Assembly: GCF_902713615.1 (NCBI RefSeq)
Contig: NC_052158.1
Location: forward strand, 38,493,729 to 38,557,728
Length of the DNA: 64,000 nt
Direction of reading: 5' to 3'
Source: Scyliorhinus canicula
Lineage: Eukaryota
Shown here: positions 19,096 to 47,260 of the stretch, piece by piece
How positions within the stretch are numbered: the stretch's first letter is position 1
Layout of the letters: every line of letters starts with the position of its first letter
Position numbers and translations under genes: made by a program
Notes under the pieces: model-generated
What the model was told of the DNA's origin: nothing
Databases searched by the model: none
The model's input: only the letters and a program-made list of their open reading frames with translations

Positions 19096-20235
19096 TGGTG
19101 AATCTCTGTGTCTATTCGGAACCCTGGGTATCCAGTATCCCTTCTCAGGTCCCAAATAACAGGTCAAATCTGTGCTTTATGGCAAAGTCCACTTGCACTT
19201 TATTTGTCAGCTGTGTCACAGGTAACTTATTTTCAATGCAACATTTAGGAAGTTCCGACTAGCCCTACAGAAAGCTAGTCAGATTAATTGGCTTTAGCGA
19301 ATACAGTAGTTGAGTTTTCATTCAATTACGGATCGTAGTAATTCTTCAGGATAATATAACTAAGTGATTTAAACAAAAGAAAGATGGCAATTGGTAAGCA
19401 GCAAAGAACTAGGTTTCAGAAATATAGATAGGGTGATTCCAGAATGAGTTTTTCCATCCCGGTAAATGATTCTTAAGGAGATTATTATCTTAAGGTTTGG
19501 TCTTCTTATTACTTCTGATTGGCTTTAACTAATTTATAATTCGCTCAATTCGGCCAAACTGTCAGTCTATCAATTTATGAGATATATGTATTTCAATATA
19601 TTGGTGCCAATTTCCCATTCCATCGCTTGCCAATTTAATTAGAAAAATACAGTTTTTGTTAAGAGATTATCAGTCCTAGACTGGCTGTTACTATAGAAAC
19701 GGGACTACTCATACTGGACAGCCGCCCAGCTTTTACCAAACAATGGGGCCTTTTAGCTAGTTGACATCACTGGCAGTCTCACAAGCAACTTGCAAAATGT
19801 GAAACTTAAAAATTAAAGAGCATTATCTGGATTAACGCTTAGTGGATTCCCAACTACTGTTGCACTGAAATAATGCTTAGCATGATTATCGTTAATTATT
19901 ATTAATGAGTTCTCAATAAACCTCTATCATCTTCCCTTACTCTCATGATTATAGCTGATTGGAAAAGTCAATTTCTATCACACTCTCAGGGCAGGTATAG
20001 GATGTATAGATATACACTGTCGTTCTGGATCCACACACGTTCCATCAAATATCTAACAAAGGTGCACAGGATATGTTTTAGAGGGTGCTGACATAACCTC
20101 CAGTAAAATGTTGGGAACTTGAGGAGAACGTGGGAAGAGAATGGATGATAATAGATAAATGACACGCATTGGAAATGTTAACCGTCGGTTAGCAGTTGAG
20201 AACGTGTCAGCTTCTGCAGCATGTTAAATTGAAGA

Positions 20236-20241
20236 TTTATT
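20236..20241 (-). terminator. Polyadenylation signal (AATAAA) of the class I gene
   Basis: First AATAAA on the minus strand after the stop codon, about 330 nt downstream. Confidence 0.6.
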
Positions 20242-20324
20242 TTACATTTACAAGTAGTATTTATGAATCAGATGCACCATCTTTGCCCCATGAGTGTATC
20301 ATTCTCTACCAGTCTCTGCTGTTC

Positions 20325-20650
20325 TCCGCTAGTCACTGCCAGAGTCTGCTGGTAGCTGTGAGTCTCTGCCATTCTCTGCTGGTCATTGTGAGTCTCTGCC
20401 AATCCCTGCTGGTGGCTGCCAGTCTCTCTCATCTCGGACATTCATGGCTGGTCTCGGACAGTCGCTGTTGGTCTCTGCGAGTATCTGCTGGTCTCGGCTA
20501 CTGTCTGCTCGTCTCTCACCAGCCTGTGCACTGCCAGTCGAACCAGTTTCCACTGGTCTCCGTCACACTCTACTGTTCTCCGTCACACTCTGTCAGTGCC
20601 TGCAGGTATCTGCCAGTCTCTGCCAGTCTTTGCTGGTTGCTGCCAGTCAC
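20325..20650. repeat. Degenerate 10/20/30-bp tandem repeat spanning the class I stop codon and 3'UTR
   Basis: 30-bp units such as agtctctgccattctctgctggtcattgtg, 10-bp sub-periodicity, and a 20-bp tandem duplication near 20560-20600. Confidence 0.75.
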
Positions 20651-20766
20651 ATTGTTCATTCTCTTCCTCCAGAAACCAATTCCAATGATGATGCAAAGTA
20701 GAGTGAGTGAGATGGCTGTTGCTCCAACTGTAATCCCGACCTTCACGCCTTCTTGTGCCACTCTCT
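20570..20766 (-). CDS. MHC class I-like heavy chain, TM plus cytoplasmic exon
   Basis: CAGCAG acceptor in phase 1. Hydrophobic VGITVGATAISLTLLCIIIGIGFW followed by basic RKR, TAG stop at 20572-20570, AATAAA downstream. Confidence 0.8.
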
Positions 20767-20999
20767 CTGCTGGCACATACAGTTACATTAAAATTATATC
20801 GAGCAATAATAATTTACGAATGATTCTGTACTTCAATGTCCTGCAAACTAGTACTGTACATGTCTGATATTAGAGAAAGAATGTTTTAAATGTATGTACT
20901 ACCTTTTATGAACACAAGGCTAGATTGAGATAGGTACAGGACTATGGCGAGAGGTTAGCGGGACAATGGACTAGTTTGGGGTTGATACAGGGTTAGAGT

Positions 21000-21700
21000 C
21001 ATAGAGTTTTTACTGCATGGAAAGAGGTCCTTCGCCCATCATGTCTGTATCGGGCATCAAGCACCTATTCACTCCAGTGCCATTTTCCAGCTCTTGTCCC
21101 TTAGCCTTGTAGGCTGCAGCATTTCAACTGCTCTTCTAAATACTTCCCAAATGTTGTGAGGGTTCCCGCCTCTAGCACCCTTTCAGGCAGCGAGTTCCAA
21201 ATTCCTACCACCCTCTGGGTGAAAAACATTTTTCCTCACATCCCCTTTAAACATCCTTCCCCTTCCCTTAAATCTATGCCGCCTGGTTATTGACCCCTCT
21301 ACTAAGCGGAAAACTCACTTCCTATCCACACTATCTCTGTTCTTCATAATTTTATACGCCTCAGTTACCCAAGAAAACAACCCCAGCCGAACCAGTCTCT
21401 CTTGATAGCTGAAACACTCCAGCCCAGGAAACATCCTGGTGAATTCTCCTCAACCTCTCTAGTGCAATCATATCCTCCCTATAGTGTGGTGACCAGAACT
21501 GCACACAATACTCTAGCTGTGGCCCAACCAGTGTTTTATACAGCTCCATCATAACCTCCCTCTTATAATCTATGCCACGGCTAATAAAGGCAAGTATCCT
21601 TAACCACCTTATCTACCTGTCCTGCTGCCTTTCAGGATCTTTGGATACAACCCAAGGTCCCTCTGGTCTGTATTTCCCAGCATCCTACCATTCATTGCCA
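21000..21700 (-). mobile_element. CR1 3' fragment (another at about 22050-22400)
   Basis: LYKTLVGPQLEYCVQFWSPHYR and reverse-complement CR1 tail motifs. Confidence 0.8.
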
Positions 21701-22404
21701 TAGGGCGAAATCTTCCCAAAAGGAAACAAAGTCCTCGTGCGAGCGCGTTTAGCCATGTGGATATTCAAAATGACTTGCGTTGAATAAGGGGCTTAAACGC
21801 GTGGCCGAGGCCACATGTAGCCCCATTTTTTACAACCTTACTGTCTCGCTCTAAAGTGCAGAATTGACAAAAATGAATGCCACCTACTGTGGGCGGGATT
21901 CACCTTGCAACATCTTGTGGCATTGCATTGAGTCTCGCGAGGCATTGCGAGCCGGGTGGATCCCGGAAGCAGGGTCTCCCGGCTTCCAACAACCACACTG
22001 CCTACGGCGAGCTGCTTTTGGGGCACAGTGTGGCCACATGTTTGCACCTATAGAATCATAGAGGTATTCAGCACAGAAAAGCCCCTTCGTCCCATCGCTT
22101 CTGCACCGGTCAAAAACAACCATCTAACGATTCTAATCCCATTTTCCAGCCTTGTATGTCCTGTCATCGCAAGTACACATCTAAATACTTCTTAAATGTT
22201 ATGAGGGTCTCTGCCTCCACTGCCCTTTCAGGCAGCAAGTTTCAAACTCCCCCCCCACCCTCTGGTTGAAATCTATGTCCCTGATCATTGATCACTCCAC
22301 CGAGGGGAAAGGTTTCTTCCTGTCTACTCTATCTGTGTCCATCATAATTTTATGCATCCCAATGATTACCAACCCCCTCAGTCTCCTCTGCTCCAAGGAA
22401 AACT

Positions 22405-23318
22405 AAAACTCTCCCACGAGATGTCGGAATCGGAGCTCCACCTCAAATGGGTGGCACCGAATGACGCTCGTGGGCGTAGGTCGTGGACCTACTTACGACC
22501 TACCTGCGCGGGATCCACCGGTCTTTCATTCTTCGGCCTCTCCAGGGAGGCTGCAGCCAGGCTCCATTTAGTGCTGGTCCACACAAACATGGGCCAGGCG
22601 AATGGCACCCGGGCCATCAGAGAGACCTGGGTGGTCAGGGTCAGTGCAGGGTGGCTCCCTAGCCCTCCCCTGGAATTGGACACGTTGGCACTGCGCAGGT
22701 GGCACCTTGACACTGCTACCCTGGCACTGCCATGGTGCGTGGATGGCACTGCCAAGCTAGCAGGAGCACTGACTGGGTGCTAGGGTAGCAATACCAGGCT
22801 GCCCAAGTGCCAGGGTGGCACTGCCAAGGGTTAGGGATGAGGGGGACCATGCCCATGAAATGAGGGTGGGAGAGTTTGAAGGGAATGCAGGGCAGGTAGG
22901 GGCATCTGGGAGATTGGGGGGTAATGGATGGGGTACTATGCAGGAAGTGATACTGTAAGCTGGTTTTGGGGGGCAGAAGTGGGGGGGACCCCCAGGTACC
23001 CTATATTGGGGTGTCCTCACTTGGAGGGTGTGGGATAGAGTCCATGTGTGTGGAGGGTGACATTGCCCATGTGTGGGGGTGTGGGGGACCCACAAACTCA
23101 GTTAGAGTTCGGCGCACCATTTCAAAATGGCATCCCGATCTCTGAGTTCAGCTCCCCGGTGCTAAAGTGTGGGCTAAGCCTGTGAGAATATCCCCATTGC
23201 CCAATAACGTGACTGAGTGTCATTGAATAGCAGTGAGGAACTCGCCGGCAGAGCCGAGAGAAACCCCCTGAAAAACCCAACACAAATTAACTTAGAAATT
23301 TTGGGAGAGAATCGCCCC
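22405..23318. mobile_element. Non-autonomous Harbinger-like element, partial
   Basis: GC-rich, with a right end gagaatcgcccc like the MITE TIR; left TIR not found. Confidence 0.45.
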
Positions 23319-23409
23319 CGAACGGGTGGATTCTTCCACCCCACCAGCCACAAAAATGTCACAGGCGAGACAACAACAATCAGAAACTTCAGTAGGGCAG
23401 CAGAATTTG

Positions 23410-24790
23410 TTTGAGATTGATACAGAGCTAAGGGAAACGAGTTGGGTACTGGGATTAATTCGGGACTGATGCAGGGCTATGGGGAGAGTGTGGGGTTGTG
23501 GGATTAGTTTGGGATTGATACAGGGATGTTTGGAAAGAGTGGGCAGTGAGATTAGTGTTGGATTGATACAGGCCTATGCAGAGAGAGTGGGGCAGTGGAA
23601 TTAGCTAGGGATGGATATCAGGACCAGAGGTGACAGTGGGGCAGCGGGATTTATCTGGGACTGATACAGGGCAATGGGACAGCGTGGGGAAGTGGGATTA
23701 GTTTGGGATTGATACAGGGTGATAGGTAGTGTGGGACAGTGGGATTAGTTAAAGATTGATGCAGGCCTATTGGGAGAGAGTGGGGCAGTGGGATTAGTTT
23801 GGGATTGATACAGAGTTATGGGGAGAGAGTGGGGCAGTGGGATTAGTTTTTGATTCATACAGGGCGATTGGTAGAGTGTGGGACGGTGGGATGTTTGGGA
23901 TTGATACAGGGCTATGGGTAGAGTGTGGGGCAGTGGGATGTTTGGGATTGATACAGGGCGATTGGTAGAGTGTGAGGACAGTGGGATGTTTGGGATTGAT
24001 ACAGGACTATGGGGAGAGTGTGGGGCAGTGGGATAGAACATAGAACATAGAACAGTACAGCACAGAACAGGCCCTTCGGCCCTCGATGTTGTGCCAAGCC
24101 ATGATCTCCCTACTCAAACCCACGCTATACCCGTAACCCAACAACCCCCCCTTAACCTTACTTTTAGGACACTACGGGCAATTTAGCATGGCCAATCCAC
24201 CTAACCCGCACATCTTTGGACTGTGGGAGGAAACCGGAGCACCCGGAGGAAACCCACGCACACACGGGGAGGACGTGCAGACTCTGCACAGACAGTGACC
24301 CAGCCGGGAATCGAACCTGGGACCCTGGAGCTGTGAAGCATTTATGCTAACCACCTGCTACCGCGCTGCCCCTTTGTTTGGGATGTTTGGGATTGATACA
24401 GGGCGATTGGTAGAGTGTGGGACAGTGGGATGTTTGGGATTGATACAGGGCTATGGGGAGAGAGTGGGGCAGTGGGATTAGTTTGGGATTGGTACAGGGC
24501 GATTGGTAGAGTGTGGGAGAGTGGGATTAGTTTAGGATTGATACAGGGCGATTGGTAGAGTGTGGGACAGTGGGATTAGTTTGGGGTTGATACAGGGCGA
24601 TTGGTAGAGTGTGGGACAGTGGGATTAGTTTGGGATTGATACAGGGCGATTGGTAGAGTGTGGGACAGTGGGATGTTTGGGATTGATACAGGACTATGGG
24701 GAGAGAGTGGGGCAGTGGGATTAGTTTTTGATTCATACGAGGCGATTGGTAGATTGTGGGACAGTGGGATGTTTGGGATTGATACAGGAC
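23410..24790 (+). repeat. ~48-bp minisatellite (gggattgatacagggctatggggagagtgtggggcagtgggattagttt), split by a SINE
   Basis: Many degenerate tandem units are visible directly. Confidence 0.9.
24035..24372 (-). mobile_element. V-SINE long form inserted in the minisatellite
   Basis: Complete head, V-domain and (ttctatg)n tail in reverse complement. Confidence 0.85.
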
Positions 24791-25274
24791 TATGGGGTGT
24801 AATTAGAGCACTGGACTGCCATTACCACGGCCTGCAAGGCAGCCAATTGCTGCACACCACCCACCCTGGTTCTTCAAAGTGACACTGGCATATGGTTACC
24901 ACCACCTCCGCATCCCACCCTCTACCATACCACACCCACCCTGCACACCCGGCCACCACCTGCCAGCAGCCCACCCTGGACAAAGTCCATGGTAGCCACT
25001 ACGGGGCGAAGGTTGTGGACCAAGGAGCGTATCCCTAGCAAGGACAGTCCCAGCCAATAGTACCCCTGGCACCAGGGACAGGCGCCAGAGCCAGAGGCCT
25101 TCAGGCACCGACGGGGCCAGGAGTGCGGGGATGGGGGGAGGGAGCGAGTGTAGGGTGTTACATGCAGGGGCAGAGTCCGCAGTGACAACCTAAGCCGTTG
25201 TGTTGCTCGGTGGACCTGGTTGGGCATGGGGTACGCACCATGCTACCATGCCGGCCTTCCACCCCCTACAGCCA

Positions 25275-26480
25275 ATGGATATTGGAATTCAACAAGCAAT
25301 GCTGGCCTTGCTGCTAATCGCCGCAGCCCCGGGGGATAACTTGCGACTGTATGAGTTGGAGCTGCTCGAGGAGGAGGAAGCTGTAGCAGCAGAGCCTGCC
25401 CCAGAGGAACAAGAGGAGTCTGCCCAGGATGGAGAGCCAGCCACCCAACAGGCCGAGGAGGTGGAGGCGCCACATGAGGCCTTGTGTGTACCGGCAGCGC
25501 CTGTCATTTGAGGATCTGTCGGACCAGGTATGTCGTCCAAGACTCCGGATGAGCAGGGGGACAGTGCGACGTATCTACCAGGTGATAGCACTCCTGGCAC
25601 TGTGGTGGTATGGGGGAGGAGACCCGCTCTGGTGGCTGTCGGGGTGATGGTCACCCTGACCTTTTACAGCACAGGATCCTTTCAGGTGCCGAATGGCAGC
25701 TGTCTGGGATCTCACAGACCATCACAGAGGCCCTATATGCCCAGGTGGCTCAATACATCCACTTCAATGTGGACAGAGCCTGCCAGAATGTCCGGATAAT
25801 GAGGTTCGCCGCCATCGATGGGATGCCCAGGGTCCAGAGGTTGATTGACGGGATGCATGTCCGCCTACGACGAGCACCTGCAGATGACAGGCGGCTCTAC
25901 ACCAACTGAAAGAGGTTCCGCTCGATGAACGTACAGCTGATATGTGACAATCAACTGTGCATCATTCACCTCTGCATCGGATACCTGGGCAGTGTGCACG
26001 ACGCCTTCATTCTGACATGCTCGAGACACTTCTCCAGCTGGGAGGGTTGACTCTTGGGTGATCGGGGCTATCCGCTGCGGTCCTGGTTGATGGCATCTAT
26101 AGGGAGGCCACAGACTGACATTGAGACCTGCTACACTGATGCCCATTCAGCAACCAGGGCGTGATCGAGTGATGCTTCGGACTCCTGGAGGTGCAGTTCA
26201 GGTACCTGGTCCACTCTGGAGGGGAGCTCCAGTATGATGCTGTGAGGCTCGCTCGCCACTGGCGGCCTGCTGCATCCTCCACAACATCGCACAGCAGAGG
26301 GCCGATGTGCTGAAGGAGGAGGAGAAATGGCAGGCTTCATCCGACAGGCAGAATGCAGGTGAGGGTGAGGGAGGGCAGGACATGCGGCCCAGGCAGGCAT
26401 GAGAGGCCACACAACGTATGCGGCAGGGGCAACGTGCATGAGACACTCTGATCGCCTCCAGGTTCACCAACTCTTGGATG
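25275..26480 (+). pseudogene. Harbinger (HARBI1-like DDE) transposase, frameshifted
   Basis: YRQRLSFEDLSDQVC, TFYSTGSFQ, IDGMHV, SMNVQLICD, GSVHDAFIL, LLGDRGYPL and ILHNIAQQR across different frames. Confidence 0.85.
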
Positions 26481-26829
26481 GAGACTGGACGGAGGCACGG
26501 GCAGCTAAAGTGACTCCCTGTCGGGCCGTCCCCACAGCCTGCAATGCCCTCTGTGATACCTGCTGTACCGGATTGGCTGTGTTATGCGCACCAGATAGTG
26601 TCCCAGGAGCCTCTTCACTAAAGCCCAAACGAGGTGCTTATCTCTGGGATGGTGGAGGGTGTTGGAGATTCTGTTACTGGAAATCTGTGTCATCCTCTGA
26701 GCCGAAGTCCGGTTCTCCTGAGTCTCAGGTCGAGGGCTGACCTCTGAACTGCTCTCGGCACTGCTTGGCTCACGGTGGGGCTCCAGCCGTGGCACTGGCT
26801 ATGGGTGGGGGATGCCAGATGGACCCGCC

Positions 26830-27803
26830 TCATTACCAGCAGGTTCTGCAAAACACAAGATAAGACGCATGATTAGAATGCGGCTGAGGGGTGGTGGGGA
26901 TGAGCGTGTGGGTGGGAGATGGTGAGCGTCAGGGTAGTATAGGGTGCAGGTGTGGGTGAGGGTGTGGGTGGTGGGGGGGAGGGTTGTGTGGGGGTGGAGG
27001 TGGTGTAGGGTGCAGGTGTGGGTGAGGGTGTGGGTGGTGGGGGGGAGGGTTGTGTGGGGGTGGAGGTGGTGTAGGGTGCAGGTGTGGGTGAGGGTGTGGG
27101 TGGTGGGGGGGGGAGGGTTGTGTGGGGATGGTGTTAGGGGGGTGTTGACACGCATGTCATGGGGAACCGCAAGTAAACTGGGTCTCACTCCCTCACCCGT
27201 GGCTGAACTTCACCTCGGTGATCTCCCTTTCCTCCAGGCTGCCGACCACATCCAGGGCTCTCTGCTCTGCCACAATGAGGGGCCGCAGGTCCACCGGTCC
27301 CCCTCCTGTCTTCTCCCAATCCCGGCAATTATGGGTGGCCTTCCAGGGAAGGGCGGGGTGGGATGCAAACAACAAAATGACAGTGTTAGACAGTCCGACA
27401 CATGCAGCCCAGGGGGTGGGTAGCTGGTGGCCTCAGTGGCCAGGGCACATGGCTCTGGCGGCCGGTATGGGTGCCAGCATGTAGTGCAGGGTGGGTATTC
27501 GCCACCCTCCGGGTGGGTGGGTGTGTCGGGTTACAGGTGTGTGGGACAGGGGTTGGTGCCCGGGGCACAGTGCTGCCTACTCACCCTGGCCGCCCTGAGG
27601 AGGTCGTGCAGTTGTTTCTAGGCACTGCTGGCCAGTCTGAATGGTGTTGCCATGGCGCTGACCGCCTCTGCCATCTGTGCCGTGGCATGGTGAATGGTGG
27701 TGGCTGGCAGCCTCCTTCCCGGGCCAGGATATAGGGTCATCCTTCTCTGGTCCACCGCATCCAGGAGGGTCTCCAGCTCAGCGTCGGTGAGTCTTGAGGC
27801 CAT
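26830..27803 (-). pseudogene. Harbinger Myb/SANT-like DNA-binding protein relic (intron-containing)
   Basis: MASRLTDAELETLLDAV...QLHDLLRAAR|GTGAGT, then HNCRDWEKTGGG...AEQRALDVVG. Confidence 0.75.
26941..27125 (+). repeat. 66-bp G/T-rich triple tandem repeat
   Basis: Units start at 26941, 27007 and 27073. Confidence 0.85.
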
Positions 27804-29118
27804 TTTGTTGGCTGGGATGGGAGTGAAGTGTGTATATGTGGCTGCAGCTTGTCAGCCTCCCGAGTGTTGATCACAAAACCAGTGAATCCCACGCCATTTC
27901 TCATTGGAATCGATTGTGTTCCACGTGTCGCCGGCATTAGCCCCTTAATAGTAGCAAAATCGGTCCAGGTGCGGCACTGGTTTTGCTGTCGTGGAAGACC
28001 ATGAATTCTGAGTCAGCGTCAACACTGAGTGTTAGAAACAGAGAATCACGCCCACAGTGTTTTGCCTTCAACGGCTTCCTGTGGTAATGAATTCGATAGG
28101 CCGATGCTCTCTGAGTAAAGTAATTTCTCCTCATCTTTATCCTAAATGGTCTACCCCATATTCTCAGACTGTGACCCCGGGTTCTGGACTCTCCCACCAT
28201 TGGGAACATCCTACATCTACCCTGTCTAGTCCTGTTAGAATTTTACAGGTTTCTATGGGAACTCCCCCTCATTCTGCTGAACTTCGACAAACACAATCCT
28301 GACCAACTCAATCTCTCCTCATACATCAGTCTTGTCATCCCAGGAATCACTCTGGTAAACCTTCACTGCACTCCCTCTATCGCAAAGATATCGGATATCG
28401 GGAAGTCTATAATCCAAGAGATTGGAAGTAAGGAACTAGCTATGCAAAGCCCTAGTTGAGACCACATCTGGAATACTATGAACAAATGTGGGCACTAAAC
28501 AATTGGGAGGATACATTGGCCTTGGAATGTGAGGGGCATAGATTTACCTTCGACACGAAGGGTTTGACAGAAGTTCGGAAGTCTCATCCACAAAAGGCAA
28601 TTTGATGCCACATCAATTGCTCATTTTTGAAAATAGGATACATAGATTTTTATTACATGGGATAAAGGTGAGAAAATGGATTTGGGTCACTGACTGATCA
28701 CTGGATAGTGAAACAGGCTCGAGGGGCCGACCCATCGAATCTATACAGTGCAGAAGGAGGCCATTCAGCACATTGAGTCTGCACTAACCCTCTAAAAGAG
28801 CACCCCACCCAGGCCCACTCCCCCACCGTATCCCTGCAACCCCACCTAACCTGCACATGCCTGGTCATCAAGGGGCAATTTAGCATGGCCAATCCACATA
28901 ACCTGCACATCTATTCCTCTGTGTAAAGGAATGTGCCAATCCTTCTGGTTACCAACATTTAGTAACCCCACGCCTTTTAAAAAACAATCATCGCATGTCT
29001 GACCATTACAGATGAGACCATCTGACCCCTCACTGGGGCTTTCTGCTTTGAACAAACAGACTGAGAGAGCACCCAGGGCTGGTGGAAGGACCCTGCTGCC
29101 CTGTCACTTGTCACTTAC

Positions 29119-29391
29119 CCCAGCGTACATCGAGGCCCTGCAGGAGGCTGGCATGCTCGACGTGACAGGAGTATACCTCCCCATCATCTCCCATCAGATC
29201 CATCGTTTTCATCACCCGATATGTCTCGTCCTGGTTGGGCAGCGTGCCACTGGATTCAACGTTGAGGACTTCCTCACCGTCCCTCAGCCATGCCACATCG
29301 ATTGGCCAGGGGTAAAAACCCGTCACAAGGCAGGAGAGTCTCAGCACTCGCTCGCCCTCAATCCTGTTCGCAATGAACACCTCAGGGATGG
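29119..29391 (-). CDS. MHC class I-like heavy chain, alpha3 exon (Ig C1-set, 273 bp)
   Basis: Acceptor cacttgcag, donor G|GTAAGT. LSCLVTGFYP...W...YSCHVEH is the C1-set signature. Confidence 0.95.
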
Positions 29392-30214: not shown

Positions 30215-32345
30215 AAGAACAAAGAACAATACAGCACAGGAACAGGTCCTTCGGCCCTCCAAGCCTGTACCGGTCATGATACCAACCTTTGCCAAAACCC
30301 TCAGCACTTCCTTGTGCCGTATCCCTCTATACCCATCCTATCAATATGTTTGTCAAGATGCCTTTTGAACGATGTTAATGTATCTGCTTTAACAACCTCC
30401 CCTGGCAACTCGTTCCAGGCACCGACCACCCTCTGTGTAAAAAAGTTGCCTCTCTCATATTCCAAATGCGGCCTTACCAAGGTTCTATACAACTGGAACA
30501 TGACTTGCCAGTTTTTATATTCGATTACCCGTCCAATGAAGGCAAGCATTCCGTATGCTTTCTTGACTACCTTGTCCACTTGTGTTGCCATTTTCAAAGA
30601 TCTTTGGACATGCACGTCCAGATCTCTCTGACTTTCTATATTCCTAAGAGTTTTGCTATTTCCATTATATTTCCCCTCTATGTTAGACCTACCAAAATGC
30701 TCACGTCACATTTGTCTGGATTAAATTCCATTTGCCATTTCTCTGCCCAAGTCTCCTATCTATGTCTTGCTGTATCACCTGTCAATTCTCAACTATCTGC
30801 CACTCTCCCAACCCTGGTGTCATCCGTGAACTTACTCATCAGACCAGCCACATTTTCCGCCAAATCTTTTATGTACACTACATCAGAGGCCCCAGCACAG
30901 ATCCCTGTGGAACACCACCAGTCACAACATTCCATTCAGAAAAACACCCTTCTACTGCTATCCCTTGCCTTCTGTGACCGAGCCAGTTCTGTATCCACCT
31001 TGCTACCTCATGTCTGATCCTGTGTGACTTCACCATTTGTACCAGTCTGCCATGAGGCTCCTTGTCAAAGACTTTACTGAAGAGCATGTAAACAACATCC
31101 ACCGCCCTCTCCTCATCAATCATCTTTGTCACCTCCTTAAAAAACTCAATCAAGTTGGTGAGGCATGACCTCCCCTTCACAAAACAATGTTGTCTATCGC
31201 TTATGAGTCCATTTGTTCCCAAATGGGTATAAATTCTGTCCCTGAGATATCTCTCCAATAATTTACCTACTACCGACGTGAGGCTCACCTGTCTATAGTT
31301 TCCAGGATTATCCCAGCTCCCTTTCTTAAACAGCGGTACCACATTAGCTATTCTCCAGTCTACTGGGATCTCACCTGTAGCCAATGAGGATACAAAGATG
31401 TCAGTCAAAGCCCCAGTAATTTCCTCCCTTGCTTCCCTCAGTATTCTGGGGTAAATCCCATCCGGCCCAGGAGACTTATCTACCTTAATATCTTTTTTTG
31501 AAGACAGAATACCTCCTTTTTGATGTCAACATGATCCAGATTGTCCACACACCCTACCCAAGAATCATCTTCCACAAAGTCCCTGGGCAGGATTCTCCAA
31601 TAATGGGGCTATGTCCCCACTCCTGCATCAAAACACGGGTTTATCCTCCAATTTGCATGGTGCTCGCAGGACCCTGGAGTACTCCTCGCAGCTCTGCCTG
31701 CCAATACAGGGCCCTGCACTTCCTGTCAGGAGTCCATGCATGCACACGGCAACAGCCTTTGGCGGCTGCCCCGCACAACATGGACTCACACTGCGGAGCA
31801 GCCCCGGAAATATAGGCCCCCCTCGGGATCGCATGAACCGCGGATCGTTGTCCCCGATCGCTAGCCTGCCGTCCGTGAGGCCCCCCCCCCCAAGTGAAGG
31901 ATCTCCTCGCCACCCACTAGGGTGGCCGCCGACTGAGTCTGCAGCTGCTTCCGACTGTTCCCAATAGGCAAAGTGTGGTTAGAACCACGCCGTCGGGAAC
32001 TCGGCCAGTTATTGGAGAATCGCCGCGGGGGCCTGTGAATGGCCCCCTACCCACACCACGTAGACCACGCGTGCAATTCGCAGCGATTCTCCAGGGACCG
32101 GAGACTGTCGGGAGTGGCGTCATGCCGGTTTTCGGTGTCAAGGCCCATTCTCTGCCTCCGCACCGATCGTGATTTCGGGGGGGGGAGGTTTGGAGAATTC
32201 CGCCCCCTTTCTTTGGTGAATACTGATGCAAAATACTCATTTAGTACCTCGCCCATTTCCTCTGGCTCAACACATAGATTCCCCCCACTGTCCTTAAGTG
32301 GTCCAATCAATTCCCTGGCCACCCTCTTGCTTTTTACATATGAAT
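30215..32345 (-). mobile_element. CR1 ORF2 fragment interrupted by MITE copy 2
   Basis: VVPLFKKGSWDNPGNYR, GFVKGRSCLTNL-like and GVPQGSVLGP motifs on the minus strand. Confidence 0.9.
31585..32204. mobile_element. Harbinger-type MITE, copy 2
   Basis: TIRs GGGCAGGATTCTCC...GGAGAATTCCGCC(C) and CCT TSD (AGG on the CR1 sense strand). Confidence 0.8.
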
Positions 32346-34030: not shown

Positions 34031-34084
34031 ATGGAATTCAGGCACATGGAGTGGTTGATCTGAATAGTGCAGTTACATGATAAA

Positions 34085-35204: not shown

Positions 35205-35480
35205 CTCTCCTTTGCAGAACCCCTCGTCCGCACTTGAGGTATGTCAGCAGCCATTTCACGCAGTCCTTTTCCAACAGAGCCTTGAAGTACTTGTTCATAA
35301 AGGTGTAGGCATTCCATCGGTCCGCTAACGTCTGGAACTCTGGATTTAGTGCCATCCAGCTGATTCTGTCCTTGTCAAAAACAAATGCATCTTCCCCATC
35401 ATATCCCAGCTTTATGAACCCATCTGTGGAGTTATCGCTGTATATTTCGCAGCCACACATTCCCTGGACAAAGAAAATAC
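35205..35480 (-). CDS. MHC class I-like heavy chain, alpha2 exon (276 bp)
   Basis: Acceptor ccctttccag, donor G|GTACGG. QGMCGCE...GYDGED...W...RWN...CVKWLLTYL shows the canonical C101/C164 pair, W147, W167 and Y171. Confidence 0.95.
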
Positions 35481-36164: not shown

Positions 36165-37037
36165 TAAGTACTGAGACAGTCCTGCACTGTCAGACGGTCA
36201 GTACTGAGGAAGTGTTGCACTGTCGGAGTGTCCATACTGAAGGAATGCTGCACTGTCAGAGGGTCAGTACTAAGGAAGTGACACTGTCAGAGGGTCAGTA
36301 CTGAGGGATTGCTGCACTGTCAGAGGGTCAGTGCTGAGGGAGTGCTGCACTGTCAGAGGGTCAGTACTGAGGGATTGCTGCACTGTCAGAGGGTCAGTGC
36401 TGAGGGAGTGCTGCACTGTCAGAGGGTCAGTACTAAGGAAGTGACACTGTCAGAGGGTCAGTACTGAGGGAGTGCTGCACTGTCAGACGGTCAGTACTGA
36501 GGGAGTGCTGCACTGTCAGAGGGTCAGTACTGAGGGATTGCTGCACTGTCAGAGGGTCAGTACTGAGGGAGTGCTGCACTGTCAGAGGGTCAGTACTGAG
36601 GGATTGCTGCACTGTCAGAGGGTCAGTGCTGAGGGAGTGCTGCACTGTCAGAGGGTCAGTACTAAGGAAGTGACACTGTCAGAGGGTCAGTACTGAGGGA
36701 GTGCTGCACTGTCAGACGGTCAGTACTGAGGGAGTGCTGCACTGTCAGAGGGTCAGTACTGAGGGAGTGCTGCACTGTCAGAGGATCATTAATGAGAGAG
36801 GGCTGCACTGTCAGAGGGTCAGCACTGAGGGAGTGCTGCACTGTCAGAGGATCAGTACTGAGGGAGTGATGCATTGTCAGAGGTTCTGTACCGAGGGTGT
36901 GGTGCACTGTCAGAGGTTCAGTACTGAGGGAGTGATGCAATGTCAGAGGTTCAGTACTGAGACGGTGCTGCACTGTCAGAGGGTCACTACTGAGGGCGTG
37001 CTGCACTGTCAGAGGGTCAGTACTGAGGGGGTGCTGT
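36165..37037 (-). repeat. 33-bp satellite array (reverse orientation)
   Basis: Tandem actgagggagtgctgcactgtcagagggtcagt units. Confidence 0.95.
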
Positions 37038-37269
37038 ACGGTTGCACAAAACTGACATTCTGTCTGTATTCTCAGTTTAAAGTGATTACGATCTACCACG
37101 AGAGCTCCCACATTGTAAAGAAAAGCAAATAAAATTATCATCCACTCCATTGCTCTTAGTGATACAGGAAATCAATGCTGTGTTAGTCCCAGAAAGTCAC
37201 ATTGGCCAGACAATTACCAGTCAGTTATTCAGTTATAATGTGTGACAGATCCCTTCTGTGTTAACACAA

Positions 37270-39020: not shown

Positions 39021-39034
39021 ATACAATAGGGTGG

Positions 39035-39240
39035 CACGGTTAGCATTGCTGCCTCACGGCGCTGAGGACCTAGATTCGATTCCGGACCTGGGTCACTGTC
39101 CATGTGGAGTTTGAACATTCTCCCTGTGTCTACGTGGGTCTCACACCCACAACCCAAATATCTGCAGCGTAGGTGGATTGGCCACACTAAATTGCCCCTT
39201 AATTGGAAAAATTTTTTTAAATGTAGCCTTTTTTTCAAAA
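39035..39240 (+). mobile_element. V-SINE short A-tailed form (others near 39915-40122 -, 48438-48630 +)
   Basis: Head plus shortened V-domain (gggtttcgcccccacaaccc) plus ttaattggaaaaa tail. Confidence 0.75.
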
Positions 39241-40197
39241 AGATATACTTACAGAATATCTAGAGATTTTTCCTACTTTTACCAGCCAACGCTTTCTCAT
39301 ATCCCTTCTTTCTTCTCCTAAATGCTTTCATAAGCTCCATCCTGCACTTTCTGTACTAATGCCTTCGCTAATTTGTTTCCCTTGTATTTGCTAAAAGCCT
39401 CTATTTTCCTTCGCATCATATCTTGAATATTTATGATCATCCGTGGTTCTCTGGTAGACCTTGGAAAATAGGAGACAGGTTTAGATAAAGGATCTGGATC
39501 GGCGCAGGCTGGGAGGGCCGAAGGGCCTGTTCCCGTGCTGTAATTTTCTTTGTTCTTTGTTCTTCATATCACTTGAGAGGGAAAATGTTTGGCCTGTACC
39601 CTCCACATTTCCTTTTCAAATGCTCCCCACTGCTCTTCTGTAGATTTCTCCTCAAGTAGCTCTTCCCAGTCTCCTTTGGCCAGAACCTGCCTTATTTTAC
39701 TAAAATCTGGTCCCCCCAATCCAAAACTTGTCTTTGCAACTTGTTTATTTCTTTGTCCATAGCAAGCTTAAATTGTACCATATTGTGGTCACTGCACAAT
39801 CACTTGTTGGACCCTCTACATATTGACCTAAAAGGTTCTCCTGAATACATTTATGAAATCCACTCCATCTGAGCCCTTAACACTATGGCTATCTATGATA
39901 AATTTAGAGTACCCAATTAATATTTTTTCCAAGTAAGGGGCAATTCAGCGTGGCCAATCCACCTCACCTGCACATCTTTTGGGTTGTGTGGGCGAAACCC
40001 ATGCAAACACAGGGAGAATGTGCAAACTCCACACGGACAGTGACCCAGAGCCAGGATCGAACTTGGGACCTCGGCGCCATGAGGCCGCAGTGCGAACCCA
40101 CTGCGCCACCGTGCTGCCCCTGCCAAATTAGTTTAAACCCCCCTCAACAGCACTAGCTGTCACACAGTCGCTGCACCATCCCTCTGAGGAGCCTTAC

Positions 40198-40458
40198 CTT
40201 CAGCTCCATGCCGCTGTCGATAAAATATCTCAATGTTCCCTCTGACAAGACCATGGAATCCTGCCATAGTAATCATCATGGCGGCCCAGTGATCCTTCTG
40301 GAAGGAGTGAGCCATCCATCGCTGTCTGGGTACGATGCGCTGCAAGGTGCTGTCAAAATAGACTATCTGATAGTCATCCAGCATCGCCACCAAACTATAC
40401 TCAGGCAGCTCGGCCTGGCCAAGGTTCAGTAAGTAGTAAAATGCGAGGATGTGAAAAT
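40198..40458 (-). CDS. MHC class I-like heavy chain, alpha1 exon (261 bp)
   Basis: Acceptor tttatcctgcag, donor G|GTAAGG. Translation DFHILAFYY...LPEYSLVAMLDDYQIVYFDS...PRQRWM...DHW follows the class I alpha1 pattern (H3, D29/D30, W60). Confidence 0.93.
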
Positions 40459-40644
40459 CTGCAGGATAAAAAGTGGAAACCAGTCTCAAAAACACCATCG
40501 ATTGTGAAATAAGTGAGGTGGGAACATCACGGGTTAATGCTAAACTAGAGCTTAAGAAACAAGAGCAGGCCACAAAAACCCTCGGGCCCACTCCGCAAAC
40601 TCAGTAGGATCATTGCTGACCTGCTACCTGAAGAATGATGGGTA

Positions 40645-40866
40645 GGGCAGCACGGTGGCCTAGTGGTTAGCACAACCGCCTCACGGCGCTGAGGTCCCAG
40701 GTTCGATCCCGGCTCTGGGTCACTATCCGTGTGGAGTTTGCACATTCTCCCCGTGTCTGCGTGGGTTTCGCCCCCACAACCCAAAAATGTGCAGAGTAGG
40801 TGGATTGGCCACGCTAAATTGCCCCTTAATAGAAAAAAATAATTGGGTAATCTAAATTTTAAAAAA
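40645..40866 (+). mobile_element. V-SINE short A-tailed form
   Basis: 13-bp TSD aagaatgatgggt (40631-40643 and 40867-40879). Confidence 0.9.
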
Positions 40867-40952
40867 AAGAATGATGGGTGACCTTATTGATACATAAGAG
40901 AAAATGCTGGAAAATCTCAGCAGGTCTGACAGCATCTGAAGGGAGAGAAAGG

Positions 40953-40991
40953 AGCTAACGTTTCGAGTCCAGATGACCCTTTGTCAAAGCT
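40953..40991 (-). ncRNA. Degenerate minimal hammerhead motif in a short interspersed repeat
   Basis: AGCU-UUGACAA-A-GGGUC(AUCUG)GACUC-GAAACGUU-AGCU. Confidence 0.45.
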
Positions 40992-41214
40992 TTTTTTTTA
41001 AATTTAGTGTACCCAATTATTTTTTCCAATTAAGGGGCAATTTAGCCTGGCCAATCCATCTAACCTGCACATTTTTGGGTTGTGGGGGCGAAACCCACGC
41101 AGATACAGGGAGAATGTGCAAACTCCACACGGACAGTGACCCAGGGCCGGGATTCGAACCCGGGTCCTCAGCGCCGTGGGCAACAATGCTAACCACTGTG
41201 CCACCGTGCTGCCC
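40992..41214 (-). mobile_element. V-SINE short A-tailed form
   Basis: 15-bp TSD ccctttgtcaaagct (40977-40991 and 41217-41231). Confidence 0.9.
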
Positions 41215-41934
41215 TTCCCTTTGTCAAAGCTAAAAGATATAGAAAGTGGGAAACATTTATACTTAAGGGTAAGGGAAAAGAATGATTCATAGTCATTATT
41301 GAGACATCTGTTTTCAGGGGCTTTGCAGGGTAGATGTTGAGAGGTTGTTTCCCTTTGTGGGAGAGTTTGGGAACAAAGGACATAATCTCAGAATAAGGGG
41401 CCATTTGTCTGAGACATAGACAAGGAGGAATTTATTCTCTGAGATCTTAGTGAATATGTGAAATTCTTTACCACAGAGCGCTCTAGAGGTCGGGCCGTTA
41501 AGTATGTTCAAGGCTGATAAACAGACAATCAGTAAGGGAATCAAGGGTTATGGGGATAAATTGGGGAAGTGGAGTACAGGATTATCATTTCTGATCAGCC
41601 ATGATCTCATTTAATGGTGGAGTTCACACTAAATGGCCTACTCCTGCATCTGTTTATGGTGTCAAGCCCACTTTCCTTCCCACTCCCCAAGCCATCGATT
41701 CCATTCCTGCCCTAGCATTGATCACACTCACTGTTGAATATATGCACTGATGAGCACCCGCAACTCCCTGGGATAGGGAATTCCAAAGATCCCAATCAGA
41801 ATATTGTTTGGTTCAGAAGCGCGTCAAGGTCACAGAGAGGTTGTGGAAGAGATTTGCACCTGGTCTATGAAGCCTGAGCAACGAAGGCCGACTGGGATGT
41901 TTTCCGTTGGGACAGTGAAGGCCAAGGAGATTTG

Positions 41935-42640
41935 GGGCGCGATTCTCCCAAAGGGAGACTGAGTGCCGACGCCGGAGTGAAACCGGTGTTTCACTCCGGC
42001 GTCGGAGGCCGCTCCTCGTCCCCTATTCTCCCCCCCCCCCCCCCCCCCCCCCCCCCCGGGGAGCTAAGAGCGGCGTTGCGAGAAACTCGGGGGCCGGGCC
42101 TTGACGCTTGCGTCAAAGCGGTGGGCCGAGAATGACGCGGCCAGCGGCGCCTGAGTGACGTCGGCCACGCATGCGCAGGTTGGCCGGCTCCAACCTGCAC
42201 ATGTGCGGTTGCCGTCTTCCCCTCCGCTGCCCCGCAAGACGTGGCGGCTTGATCTTGCGGGGCGGCGGAGGGGAAAGAGTGCGTCTCTTAGAGACGCCGG
42301 CCCGCCCATCAGTGGGCACCGATCGCGGGCCAGTCACCTCACGAGCATGCCCGTGGTGCTCGATCCTCTCTCCACCCCCCCACAGGCCCCACACTTACCT
42401 GTCGCGCGCTGTTCACGCCGGCAGCGACCAGGTGTGGTTGCCGCCAGCGTGAACCCGTTGGGGTCGTCAGGCCGCTCGGACCATCTGGGCCGGAGAATCG
42501 CCGGTCGCCGGGAAAAATCTCCGAGCGCCGTGTCGCAAAACGCGACACGCCATTTTGGGGGGGGGTTGGGAGAATCACGGGGGGTGCAGGGCGGCGTGTC
42601 ATGATTCGCCCGGCCCTCCCGCAATTCTCCCACCCAGTGT
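41935..42640. mobile_element. Harbinger-type MITE, copy 4 (right TIR missing)
   Basis: Left end GGGCGCGATTCTCC; GC-rich body with internal ggagaatc motifs. Confidence 0.65.
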
Positions 42641-42737
42641 GGGGAGCAACTGGTCAAGAGGCTAAGACTATTGGGGAGATTGGTAAAGCAATGAGAAGAT
42701 TCGCAGGAACTTAAAACGTTAACTCTGTTTACCTCAT

Positions 42738-42960
42738 GGGACGGCATGTGGCACAGTGGTTAGCACTGGGACTGTGGCACCGAGGACCCGGGTTCAAATC
42801 CCAGCCCTGGGTCACTGTCCGTGTGGAGTTTGCACATTCTCACCATATCTGTGTGGGTTTCACCCCCACAACCCAAAGATGTGCAGGTTCGGTGGATTGG
42901 CCACGCTAAATTGCCTCTTAATTGGAAAAAAAATGATTGGATACTCTAAATTTAAAAAGA
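42738..42960 (+). mobile_element. V-SINE short A-tailed form
   Basis: TSD ctctgtttacctc (42723-42735 and 42963-42975). Confidence 0.85.
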
Positions 42961-44214
42961 ACCTCTGTTTACCTCTCCACAGACCTGCTGAGCTTTATCG
43001 AGCCTTTTCTGATTTCATATCAGGTTTGTTGCATTTGCAGTATTTTTCACTTTAATGATGTTCAAAGCTTCTCATTGTTTGGTGAGTCACGAGCCAGTGG
43101 GACAGCAATGATGTGTAGTGGTATTGTCAGTGGGCTGGCAATCCAACAACTTGTGGTAGTAAATTTGGGACCTGGTTCAAATCCCACCATAGCCGATGGT
43201 GAAGTTTAAATTCAATAAAACTCTAGAATTAAAAAGTCTCCTGAAATGTTTGTTGTAAAAACCCATCTGATTCACTAATGTCCTTTAGAGAAAGAAATCT
43301 GTCATGATTACTGGGTCTGACCGATCGGTGAATCCAGACCCACAGTAATGTGGTTGACTTTCAAATGGTCGAACAAGCCACTCAGGTAAGGGAAATGAGG
43401 AAAGGGCAATGAATACTGACCCAGCCAGCCATGCCCACATCCCATGAATGATTGTTTTTTTTCAAATCAAAGGAGAAAATGGACCAATTTGGGCTTTGAG
43501 AGAAATGTGGGATATTAGGGTATGGAAGCTGGGATTTTCTGCTTCCTCTTGGAATGGATGCCAGCAATCCATTCTGGAAAATTCATCACCCGCCATTCTC
43601 CCATCACATATGGGAGCAGTGGCATTGTTCGATGTGCCAATTTATTCAAGTCAATGACACTGTCTCCGACACTAGTTGAATAATTGCAGAGTCGGCAGCT
43701 AATTCCCTCCATAATCAGACATGGAGAGTTCATTTTGGCCTTGACTCAGTCCGACATGGTAATAAATCCCCATAGTTGACTCAGAATTTTTTTTTAAATC
43801 GTTCTTGGGCCGGAGAAGCCGATTGGGCAGTGCCAAAGTTCAGTGTGTTATCTACGAAGTGAAGGTGGAGCCGGGGGCTAGGTTGGAATCCACACCAACT
43901 GCATTGTCACCCTGGTTGACAGAGCAGAAGGAGTTTCAGAATAATTTCTATTTGTACAACGCCTGACGCAACTTCGGAGAGTCTCAAAAGGCTTCACAGT
44001 AAATGAGATGTTTCTGAAAGTGTCCAGTTGTTGCTTTGTGAGAAACTTCATTCATTGTGCAAAGTGGTTTTGAACCCAGAGCTCAAAGTATCAAATATGA
44101 GGATATGTTGCATATATTAATACTCCATTAGATAGTGAAGATTAAGGGGTTGTGTGATTTTGATGATGAAAGGGTTTGAAATGGTGGATAGAGGGAAAAT
44201 GTTTGAATTAGAAT

Positions 44215-45295
44215 TAGAACGGTACAGCACAGAACAGGCCCTTCGGCCCTCGATGTTGTGCCGAGCAATGATCACCCTACTCAAACCCACGTATCCACTC
44301 TATACCCGTAACCCAACAACCCCCCCCCCCCCCTAACCTTACTTTTTAAGGACACTAAGGGCAATTTAGCATGGCCAATCCACCTAACCCGCACATCTTT
44401 GGACTGTGGGAGGAAACCGGATGTTTGGGATGGACAATAAGTGTGGTCTCGCCAATTCATAGAATTTACAGTGCAGAAGGAGGCCATTTGGCCCATCGGG
44501 TCTGCACCGGCTGCTGGAAAGAGCACCCTACCCAAGGTCAACACCTCCACCCTATCCCAATAACCCAGTAACCCCACCCAACACTAAGGGCAATTTTGGA
44601 CACTAAGGGCAATTTACCATGACCAATCCACCTAACCTGCACATCTTTGGACTGTGGGAGGAAACCGGAGCACCCGGAGGAAACCCACGCAGACACGGGG
44701 AGGATGTGCAGACTCCGCACAGACAGTGACCCAAGCCGGAATCGAACCTGGGACCCTGGAGCTGTGAAGCAATTGTGCTATCCACAATGCTACCGTGCTG
44801 CCCATATCCATGATCCCCATAAACAAATTGAAGGAATTTTCTCTGGTGGGGGATTCCAGAACGAGGGAGTAATGACATCAGAAAGCCATTCTTCACACAA
44901 TAGATGCTGGAAATCTGGATCTCACACTCCCAGAAAGCTGATGGAGCTGCGAGGATCAATTGAAATTGTCATAGAAACATAGAATTTACAATGCAGAAGG
45001 AGGTTATTCGGCCCATCGAGTCCTCACCGGCCCTTGGAAAGAGCACCCTACTTAAGCCCACATCTCCACCCTATCCCCGTAACACAACCTAGCCTTTTGG
45101 ACAGTAAGGGCAATTTATCATGACCAATCCGCCTAACCTGCACATCGTTGGACTGTGGGAGGAAACCGGAGCACCCGGAGGAAACCCACCCAGACACGGG
45201 GAGAACATGCAGACTCCGCACAGACAATCACCTGAGGCTGAAATTGAACCCGGGACCCTGGAGCTGTGAAGCAACAGTGCTAACCACTGTGCCCT
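44215..45295 (-). mobile_element. Stack of three long-form V-SINEs (another near 46325-46510)
   Basis: Reverse-complement V-domain cores near 44370, 44620 and 45120. Confidence 0.8.
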
Positions 45296-45929
45296 AAGGT
45301 TTGTGACTGGATTGATTAATATTTGTGGGGTCGAGAGATTCAGGCTCATGGAAGCAAGGCAACCGGATGGAGTTAAGATCAAAATCTGCTGCAAAGTAAT
45401 TGGATGTTGGAGCAGGCTGAAGGGGATTGAATATTGTGTGATGGTTTGACTGTGTAAAGCAGCTTACACTCATGTAGCACCCCTTGTGCACCGAGAGACA
45501 CCTCAGAGAACACAGCGGAGATGGGTGGGGGTGCAAGTAGAGTCAAAATCACAGTTCGGAGAGAAGAAGCTACAAGAACTTCCGGAGGGTGGGAAGAGAC
45601 AAGGGGTGGGGTTCTCCTGTGCTTGGGATTCTCTTTTCCCGCCAGCAACGCACCCCCACCGTGGGTTTCCCAGCGGCATGAGGGTGGTTTAAATGGCAAA
45701 TACCATTGAAACCACCCTCATGCAGACCTGTTGTGCTCTCCTATGGTTGACCCCTTCCCCACCCCCAGATAAACCCCCAAACCTGGGCCAGGTTTCCTTC
45801 ATGTTTCTCAGCTCAATTGATCGTTAATGTCCAGGGCGCCATTTGAAAATCTGGCTCATCTTGTCTGCACCAACTCCGAATGAATACTCTACCCACGACC
45901 ACCCCAGCCTATCCCCACAACCTAATCTG

Positions 45930-46304
45930 TGTAGTGATATGTATTTATGCTGGTATATAAAGAGTTAACAACTACATCATAGTTTAAGATAACTACTGGA
46001 TGGCAGCACTAGATTCATGTAAAATAAGTGAACTCAAATGATCTTGGGTCTCTTCAAACCAGGAGTGACTGGACAGCAGTTAGAGAGAGGTATAGCATAG
46101 TTAATACTCATAGTTAAATTTAGTTCATACTTATTCTGATTTACTTTATCACCAGTTATAGTTCTGTAAGAGTGAACAAACTCGTTAGTATTTAATTTGT
46201 TATTCATTAAACGTATTTTGCTTTGAATTGAAGATTGGTAGTTTCTTTGAAATCTAACCATCAGACCATTCTGGAAGTAAAGCAAAGAGTAATGACCTAT
46301 TACA
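45930..46304. mobile_element. Possible solo LTR
   Basis: TGTAG...TTACA ends and AT-rich body; no TSD seen. Confidence 0.35.
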
Positions 46305-47003
46305 AACAAGTAATATACAAACCTGCACATTCCAGGACACTAAGGGGCAATTTATCATGTCCAATCCACCCAACCCGCACATCTTTGGACGTGGGAGGAA
46401 ACCGGAGCACCCGGAGGAAACCCATGCAGAGACGGGGAGAACGTGCAAACTCCACACCAGCAGACACCCAAAACCAGAATTGAACCCGGGTCCCAGGCAC
46501 TGTGAGGCAGCAGTGCTAATCACTGTGCCAATAGGCAGTGAGAGAGGACAGGAAACCTACATCAAACATCCACCTATACAGAAGAACTGAAGTACTGCTC
46601 AAAATATCTCTGCCTGCCCTTCCCCCTTGTATTCTCTTCTTACTCCCAACCCCGTTCCATTCCCAATTCTTCCTTTCAATCCCATTGCCTCTCTACCAAT
46701 CTTCTTCCCCCTTCCCGTCACATTCCTGTTATTCCCTCCCGAGTTACGGCTCTCAGACGTCCCATATCAATGACGATTATATGTAACGTCCACTTTGATG
46801 ATAGTAGGCAGCCCATAAAATAACAGCCCCCAAACAGAAACATGTCAGACAAATTATCAGCACAACTTGCCATGAAGACCCCCTCCTGAAGGGATCGCCC
46901 TATGTTGTGCCTGCCAATCTCATGGATGCCCCCTCACCCTCTCCACCCCCATACCTCCACCCCCTCCTCAAATTCTGCCGACAGAACTGTTAGAATTCCT
47001 TAC

Positions 47004-47055
47004 CGGAGGAGACTATGGACACACAGCAAACATTCAGCAAAGTAACAAGCAGCAT
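47004..47055 (-). CDS. MHC class I-like heavy chain, exon 1 (signal peptide MLLVTLLNVCCVSIVSS)
   Basis: Minus strand caaaATG, 17 mostly hydrophobic codons plus one G, then a GTAAG donor. The G joins the alpha1 exon's initial AT to give Asp in frame (phase 1). Confidence 0.85.
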
Positions 47056-47260
47056 TTTGAATTGACACACAGCACACTGATTAACCAGTAATGTAATCTC
47101 TTGCGCATCAGAACACCACGCTGGAGTGAAGCTACTTATCAGTGCTCATGTGAGGCAGGTCTGATAAGCAGATCCACTCAGATTGAAAATGGATTGTTCT
47201 GGTCACTGCTTTACCAGGGAGTAGATTATGCCACCTGCCTTTTACTGCAGGCGCTCACAC
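47056..47260 (-). promoter_or_regulatory. Putative proximal promoter/5'UTR of the class I gene
   Basis: Lies directly upstream of the leader ATG. Blocks such as CTCCCTGGTAAA.CAGTGACCAGAA and CTTCACTCCAGCG are shared with the inverted copy at 47708-47916. Confidence 0.5.

Follow-up and report, generated by a model that had tools for sequence, protein, structure and literature searches.

A catshark MHC class I gene from a conserved elasmobranch lineage that is probably sister to nonclassical UGA

INTRODUCTION

Among animals that have a major histocompatibility complex (MHC), sharks and rays are the oldest, and how old the presentation of lipids or metabolites by class I-like molecules is, relative to that of peptides, is a question that the structures of two shark nonclassical class I molecules, UFA and UGA, are just beginning to address. 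A stretch of 64,000 nucleotides (nt) from the catshark Scyliorhinus canicula (assembly GCF_902713615.1, contig NC_052158.1, positions 38,493,729 to 38,557,728; hereafter the window, whose own numbering is used throughout) carries on its minus strand a single intact class I gene, and the question that it raises is to which lineage this gene belongs and what, if anything, its groove holds. A first-pass annotation had read it as a nonclassical gene with a hydrophobic groove, and had left its lineage open between the described UBA-UEA series and an unassigned one.

The analysis below points to the second of these. In our view the gene is probably the catshark representative of an old nonclassical class I (MHC-Ib) lineage, single-copy and linked to the MHC, that is the sister of UGA (the UGA-sister lineage) and whose product has a hydrophobic non-peptide ligand. 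Parts of this are already known, as the gene is in RefSeq, its sawfish orthologue (as identified here) is drawn as 'MHC-Ib' in a published map, and the structures of UFA and UGA have been solved. We would class it as an addition to the UFA/UGA kind, one that is new or at least has not been openly described, and not as a wholly new type of gene.

RESULTS

Gene Structure and Predicted Product

The gene has five exons that encode 353 amino acids (aa) with no internal stop, and its introns are all GT-AG and all in phase 1. The exons for alpha1 to alpha3 were found by listing open reading frames (ORFs) together with frame translations, the transmembrane (TM) exon by a hydrophobicity scan and the leader by an upstream search. 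The parts of the gene are as follows.

47004-47055, minus strand: exon 1, with the start codon ATG at 47055, the leader MLLVTLLNVCCVSIVSS and a GT donor (frame translation; leader conserved in orthologues)
40198-40458, minus strand: exon 2, the alpha1 domain (87 aa), with F7, H59, Q84 and an apolar helix with an AGFHG motif (Pfam MHC_I; best PDB match UGA 9CH4, E 8.5e-20)
35205-35480, minus strand: exon 3, the alpha2 domain (92 aa), with the C101-C164 pair, an extra floor Cys99, A123, L143, R146, W147, L159 and Y171 (Pfam MHC_I)
29119-29391, minus strand: exon 4, the alpha3 Ig C1-set domain (Pfam C1-set)
20570-20769, minus strand: exon 5, connecting peptide, TM helix and cytoplasmic tail, with the stop TAG at 20570-20572 (hydrophobicity scan)
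20215-20569, minus strand: 3' untranslated region (UTR), prolonging a degenerate 30-nt repeat of the tail, with AATAAA at 20236-20241

The intact five-exon gene of 352 aa that had been called from the letters is upheld by these phase-1 exons and their open frame. The one-residue difference lies at the acceptor of exon 5, a tandem CAG-CAG, where use of the downstream AG gives one Ala fewer and thus 352 aa, the form in the RefSeq models. The gene end previously set at 20215 also fits the AATAAA signal. The Pfam MHC_I matches, the C1-set alpha3, the TM helix and the phase-1 exon-per-domain plan are those of the MHC class I heavy chain superfamily, and the product is predicted to be a type I membrane glycoprotein with a leader, an alpha1/alpha2 platform, a C1-set alpha3, a TM helix and a short tail. 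Its sole N-glycosylation site (NST), encoded in exon 3, lies in an alpha2 loop and is conserved in the lineage, and there is none at position 86. No further class I copies were found in the 64,000-nt window, where tblastn with the product matched each exon once.

The cytoplasmic tail consists of a degenerate 30-nt (10-aa, ..QQRLAET..) repeat that runs into the 3' UTR (20303-20591). Tail length differs among species by the number of repeats, and the Pristiophorus orthologue, at 416 aa, reads through many more units. In a search of sequencing runs, the alpha1 exon was present in full only in four small runs of one study, of unknown library type. Run shares of about 0.10 for the alpha2-to-alpha1 stretch were traced to intron repeats, as the alpha1 exon is absent from those runs.

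The Leader Exon and the RefSeq Models

The RefSeq protein XP_038671277.1 (S. canicula, 'MR1-like') is 100% identical to the product across exons 2-5 and lacks the leader exon. Its model spans 54.6 kb and begins with a non-signal exon far upstream, beyond the window, while the S. torazame model XP_072331294.1 starts at the spot equivalent to 40867-40935, within intron 1, and both proteins as annotated are without a signal peptide. A near-identical leader (MLLVTLLNVYCVP.VSS) is present in the orthologues of Pristiophorus and Heptranchias, and because it is conserved there almost letter for letter, the exon at 47004-47055 is likely to be the true first exon. The model given here thus corrects RefSeq by supplying the missing signal-peptide exon, and the name 'MR1-like' is misleading.

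Loss of Peptide Anchors and an Apolar Groove

Residues were checked in alignments with MR1 and with the classical UAA chains of nurse shark (6LUP) and Triakis. Classical UAA is defined at the peptide termini by Y7, Y59, R/Y84, T143, K146, W147, Y159 and Y171. The catshark gene has F7, H59, Q84, L143, R146, W147, L159 and Y171 at these eight positions and so keeps only two, W147 and Y171. Position 84, where the Y/R anchor is absent by alignment, is a Gln flanked by Arg on either side, and position 123 is Ala. The residue list drawn up earlier by eye (Y7>F, Y59>H, Y/R84 absent, Y123>A, T143>L, K146>R, Y159>L, with W147 and Y171 kept) is thereby borne out in full. The same alignments agree with it on the contact residues for beta2-microglobulin (beta2m), as W60, Q96 and D122 are all kept and Q96 is invariant across 50 sequences. 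The apolar stretch of the alpha1 helix, WAAMMITMAGFHGLVRGNIEIF, is likewise present as described.

The composition of the groove was compared at 40 groove-lining positions with unambiguous alignment. In the catshark gene 27 of the 40 are apolar and three are charged (0.08), and nearly all are fixed among the 13 orthologues described below. The mean apolar fraction is 0.67 in the UGA-sister lineage, 0.55 in UGA, 0.54 in UFA (whose alpha2 alignment is unreliable) and 0.49 in UAA, which makes the groove of the UGA-sister lineage the most apolar among the shark class I groups compared here. Several floor and wall positions carry small residues (G97, C99, A123, G69 and G76). Among them, the unpaired Cys at floor position 99 (ectodomain residue 96; codon 35435-35437) is invariant in 13 of 13 orthologues, and this position is Phe in UGA and Tyr in classical chains. 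A second extra Cys (residue 171, near the end of the alpha2 helix) occurs in only nine of the 13 lineage sequences, that of the catshark included.

With classical shark UAA (6LUP; Triakis AAB97342) the catshark gene has in common its domain plan, the disulfides of alpha2 and alpha3, and W60, Q96 and D122. It differs from UAA, with which it has 24% identity in alpha1, in lacking the N86 glycosylation site and in keeping only two of the eight anchors.

Orthologues and Selection

A phmmer search of 1.84 billion representatives with the alpha1 exon gave one strong match, a protein of the little skate that is 74% identical across alpha1, and a search with that protein led to RefSeq 'MR1-like' proteins from 12 sharks and rays. 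One-to-one orthologues of the catshark gene are found in 13 elasmobranchs at 57-93% identity (93% between the spliced product and its S. torazame counterpart), and their gene tree mirrors the split between sharks and rays. In the collections searched there is one gene per species, with extra partial entries in two species, compared with one to three copies per species for UGA.

The catshark gene is under strong purifying selection. The ratio of nonsynonymous to synonymous substitution rates (dN/dS) against Heptranchias is 0.14 in alpha1, 0.11 in alpha2 and 0.35 in alpha3, and against Leucoraja it is 0.10, 0.09 and 0.32, respectively; invariant columns make up 43-46% of alpha1/alpha2 versus 28% of alpha3. 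As dN/dS is lower in alpha1 and alpha2 than in alpha3, the ligand-binding domains are the most constrained part of the molecule. Classical class I genes have the reverse pattern, and the strongest constraint on the ligand-binding domains is seen for molecules with conserved ligands.

Placement as a Sister Lineage of UGA

By alpha1, the solved structures closest to the catshark gene are two of shark nonclassical molecules. These are 9CH4, entitled 'shark nonclassical MHC class I, UGA' (released 2026-03-18), which is the nearest to alpha1 among solved structures (E 8.5e-20), and 8GM8, 'shark nonclassical MHC class I, UFA' (released 2024-11-27), which follows it (2e-11). UGA is also the best sequence match (228 bits). 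It is the best structural match of an AlphaFold2 model with a mean predicted local distance difference test score of 90.3 (Z 29.2, 268 residues aligned), other Z-scores being about 27 for chicken classical chains, about 26 for MR1, 25.9 for chicken CD1-1, 25.8 for HFE, 25.5 for ZAG and 22.4 for UFA. The catshark gene and UGA have in common the AGFHG motif in the alpha1 helix, an MN.YFK.LLEKDC stretch in alpha2, A123 and L159, and both lineages occur in sharks and rays. They differ in that UGA keeps Y7, Y59 and K146 and has Phe99, in place of F7, H59, R146 and the invariant Cys99. UFA resembles the catshark gene in lying in the same MHC-Ib cluster and in being nonclassical and elasmobranch-wide, and differs from it in its low identity, its low Z-score, its separate long-branched clade and its very divergent alpha2.

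A maximum-likelihood (ML) tree was built from 64 ectodomains, with UGA and UFA sequences gathered across sharks and rays by searches seeded with relatives of each. Named UBA, UCA, UDA and UEA references, CD1 and MR1 were outside the tree, and CD1 and MR1 were compared by PDB scores and Z-scores only. Clade supports, as ultrafast bootstrap and Shimodaira-Hasegawa-like approximate likelihood ratio (SH-aLRT) values, were as follows.

UGA-sister lineage: 100/100
UGA, with the catshark gene outside: 100/100
UGA-sister lineage together with UGA: 96/83
UFA, a separate long branch: 100/100

Pairing with UGA is also recovered in a tree of alpha1-alpha2 only (97/81), and homogenisation of alpha3 is therefore not its cause. 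The gene is not a UGA orthologue, since UGA is monophyletic without it, identity to UGA is 39% and S. canicula has a UGA of its own (XP_038671856.1), on the same chromosome. Nor is it an orthologue of UFA, which forms its own clade and has 31% identity. Classical UAA grouped with the classical chains of bony fish, and membership of the catshark gene in the UAA clade, which was made up of Triakis UAA and the sequences allied to it, was rejected by an approximately unbiased (AU) test (p 1.7e-6). This result and the two of eight anchors support the nonclassical nature that had been proposed for the gene.

For the older described lineages the comparison is indirect. UDA keeps eight of nine anchors, compared with two of eight here. 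UBA has been called UAA-derived in a review (PMC12562908), and the UAA-like clade is excluded by the AU test. The ML tree also contains a multicopy shark clade (100/100) whose members have no alpha2 disulfide, and which is separate from the catshark gene, which keeps it. We take this clade to be probably UEA, a label of our own that is unconfirmed by named references. In a quick tree it comprised 54 sequences, all from sharks, and both cysteines of the alpha2 disulfide are lacking (e.g., P0145 and P0185 of S. canicula).

Of the two placements proposed in the first-pass annotation, the unassigned one is therefore the better, with the amendment that the gene falls within the already known UFA/UGA group, as the sister and neighbour of UGA. 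A 2025 review lists UBA, UEA, UDA, UFA and UGA and no further lineage (PMC12562908). We found no name for the UGA-sister lineage in the literature reached, and literature searches gave no primary paper on 9CH4, 8GM8 or UFA/UGA. Those who defined UFA and UGA are very probably aware of it.

Linkage to UGA in the MHC

In the little skate, one contig carries a UGA-type gene at about 3-58 kb and, in the same orientation, the UGA-sister gene at about 100-112 kb. In the sawfish, the gene list in the supplement of Verissimo et al. 2023 (PMC10751288) labels class I genes only as 'MHC-Ib', and gives the order BRD2, B2M, several MHC-Ib genes, a GPR139 cluster, TRIM39-like genes and the 'MR1-like' LOC127585976 (13.96 Mb), followed by three 'F10-like' genes at 14.02-14.22 Mb, COL11A2, RXRB and HSD17B8. 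By matching product names to Pristis pectinata proteins we identify LOC127585976 as a putative member of the UGA-sister lineage, the 'F10-like' trio as probably UGA-type and the MHC-Ib set near B2M as probably including UFA-type genes; these labels are our own and are not in the supplement. Where positions are readable, that is, in sawfish and little skate, the UGA-sister gene is directly upstream of the UGA genes and on the same strand. In six further species the orthologue is on the same chromosome-scale record as other class I genes. A sister relation to UGA together with physical adjacency is what is expected of tandem paralogues.

DISCUSSION

The UGA region thus holds a second, separately conserved molecule that has lost more anchors than UGA and has a fixed Cys in its groove. 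We consider it probable that this molecule functions with a hydrophobic non-peptide ligand. The heavy chain would pair with beta2m, as its contact residues suggest, and the groove, without the hydrogen-bonding clamps for peptide ends and lined by apolar and small residues, would hold a conserved ligand, a lipid or something like it, for recognition by an innate-like T cell or a natural killer (NK)-type receptor, as proposed for UFA, UGA and CD1. The pairing and the ligand are inferred from the contact residues, from the apolar and conserved groove and from what is stated of the nearest relatives: UFA has been reported to be CD1-like, and UFA and UGA have been reported to bind CD1d-like lipids by crystallography and mass spectrometry (PMC12562908), which makes a lipid or other non-peptide ligand more plausible here.

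Several points weigh against this proposal. What that review (PMC12562908) says of lipids in UFA and UGA has the status of a personal communication, and the ligand mode of UGA, which keeps Y7, Y59, K146, W147 and Y171, need not carry over to the catshark gene. An AU test with UFA in place of UGA as partner of the lineage gave no rejection (p 0.2). In the tails of the orthologues, a YXX-hydrophobic motif of the CD1 type is not conserved (YLQA in S. canicula, HLQA in S. torazame), and the gene model is a prediction from genomic sequence and orthologues.

The comparison with CD1 of tetrapods is itself two-sided. A class I fold, here predicted to be of the beta2m type, the apolar groove and the absence of peptide anchors are shared, but CD1 showed no closer sequence or structural tie to the catshark gene than HFE, ZAG or classical chains. 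Moreover, most CD1 isoforms have a tyrosine-based endosomal motif in the tail, whereas none is conserved in the UGA-sister lineage, whose gene sits inside the MHC.

These similarities to HFE and ZAG lead to the alternative that we take most seriously, although we think it unlikely, namely that the protein is free of any ligand, as are HFE, FcRn and MIC, with the apolar residues packing the helices together and the protein acting itself as a ligand or receptor. The loss of six of eight anchors would fit such a molecule, HFE and ZAG reach the same level of Z-score as CD1 and MR1 do, and the strong conservation of alpha1/alpha2 would fit a protein-protein interface equally well. However, the small residues on the floor and walls listed above tend to widen a cavity, not to close it, and the nearest relative, UGA, is reported to bind lipids.

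Specialised hydrophobic peptides or lipopeptides, as in chicken YF1*7.1 and H2-M3, could take the place of the pure lipids of our preferred reading, and to this we would assign a rather low probability. The presence of W147, Y171 and R146 would be consistent with it, as would the structures of chicken YF1*7.1 with N-acylated ligands, which are among the high matches of the model (Z 26.2-26.7). On the other hand, Y7, Y59 and Y159 of the N-terminus pocket, and T143 and position 84 of the C-terminus pocket, are replaced, and these replacements are fixed in 13 of 13 species.

More speculative, and to our minds quite improbable, is the idea that the gene represents a third, unnamed, antigen-presenting elasmobranch lineage some 300 million years old whose mode of action differs from those of UGA and UFA, in that Cys99, amid an otherwise apolar groove, captures a ligand covalently (for example an electrophilic or acyl one) and would do with a thiol what MR1 does with its trapping lysine.

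That the gene is silent or decaying, and intact in looks only, is very improbable. No Logan-derived transcript protein was found in its 90% cluster, which speaks for this reading, but the open frame, the intact splice sites, the polyadenylation signal, the conserved leader and a dN/dS of 0.11-0.19 maintained over hundreds of millions of years in 13 species all argue against it.

MR1 and the catshark gene are about 45% identical in alpha2, both are conserved, the catshark gene is predicted to be, like MR1, of a non-polymorphic type, and RefSeq names the gene after MR1. That it is a shark MR1 orthologue presenting vitamin-B-type metabolites bound to lysine is nevertheless scarcely credible and its orthology is rejected, for although the best PDB matches of the alpha2 exon are to MR1 (E 1e-19) and the whole ectodomain gives 165-172 bits to MR1 alone, a little more than to most classical chains, Lys43 of MR1, the residue to which the ligand is joined as a Schiff base, is Ile in the catshark gene, alpha1 is barely similar (28 bits to MR1 versus 74 to UGA), the best match overall is UGA, and the similarity to MR1 is no more than expected for a conserved class I alpha2.

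The lineage that we favour as a sister of UGA with a hydrophobic ligand has one gene per species and is under strong purifying selection in all the sharks and rays where it is found, which makes it a clean target for ligand, structure and tetramer work.

OTHER FEATURES OF THE WINDOW

Upstream of the class I gene is an inverted relative of its own first exon.

47596-47987, plus strand: head-to-head inverted partial copy of the leader exon together with about 290 bp of preceding sequence (partner 46985-47344)

Complementarity of the four arms is 77-83%, and the spacer measures about 250 bp. The copy contains a leader-like frame that is 61% identical to the real leader (tblastn match 47917-47970, plus strand). 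A promoter duplication may have left it behind, or it may be a bidirectional element.

The remainder of the window is made up of ORFs of long interspersed nuclear element (LINE) and reverse-transcriptase type and of a 33-nt satellite. LINE-type retrotransposon ORFs are present at 9420-10654, 12126-17583 and 30878-31408, the last of which is a reverse-transcriptase fragment within intron 3 of the class I gene, and the large introns of the gene are due to insertions of this type. The ORF at 13789-15582 continues, frame-shifted, to 17583 (597 and 661 aa), and the pair at 13789-17583, judged by eye, is taken to be a putative endonuclease/reverse-transcriptase. The 33-nt satellite forms long arrays at 36433-37150, in intron 2, and, larger, at 52431-56319, upstream of the gene, and is open in several frames, in which it translates as repeats of HSLSTDPLTVQ or VSTEGVLHCQR.

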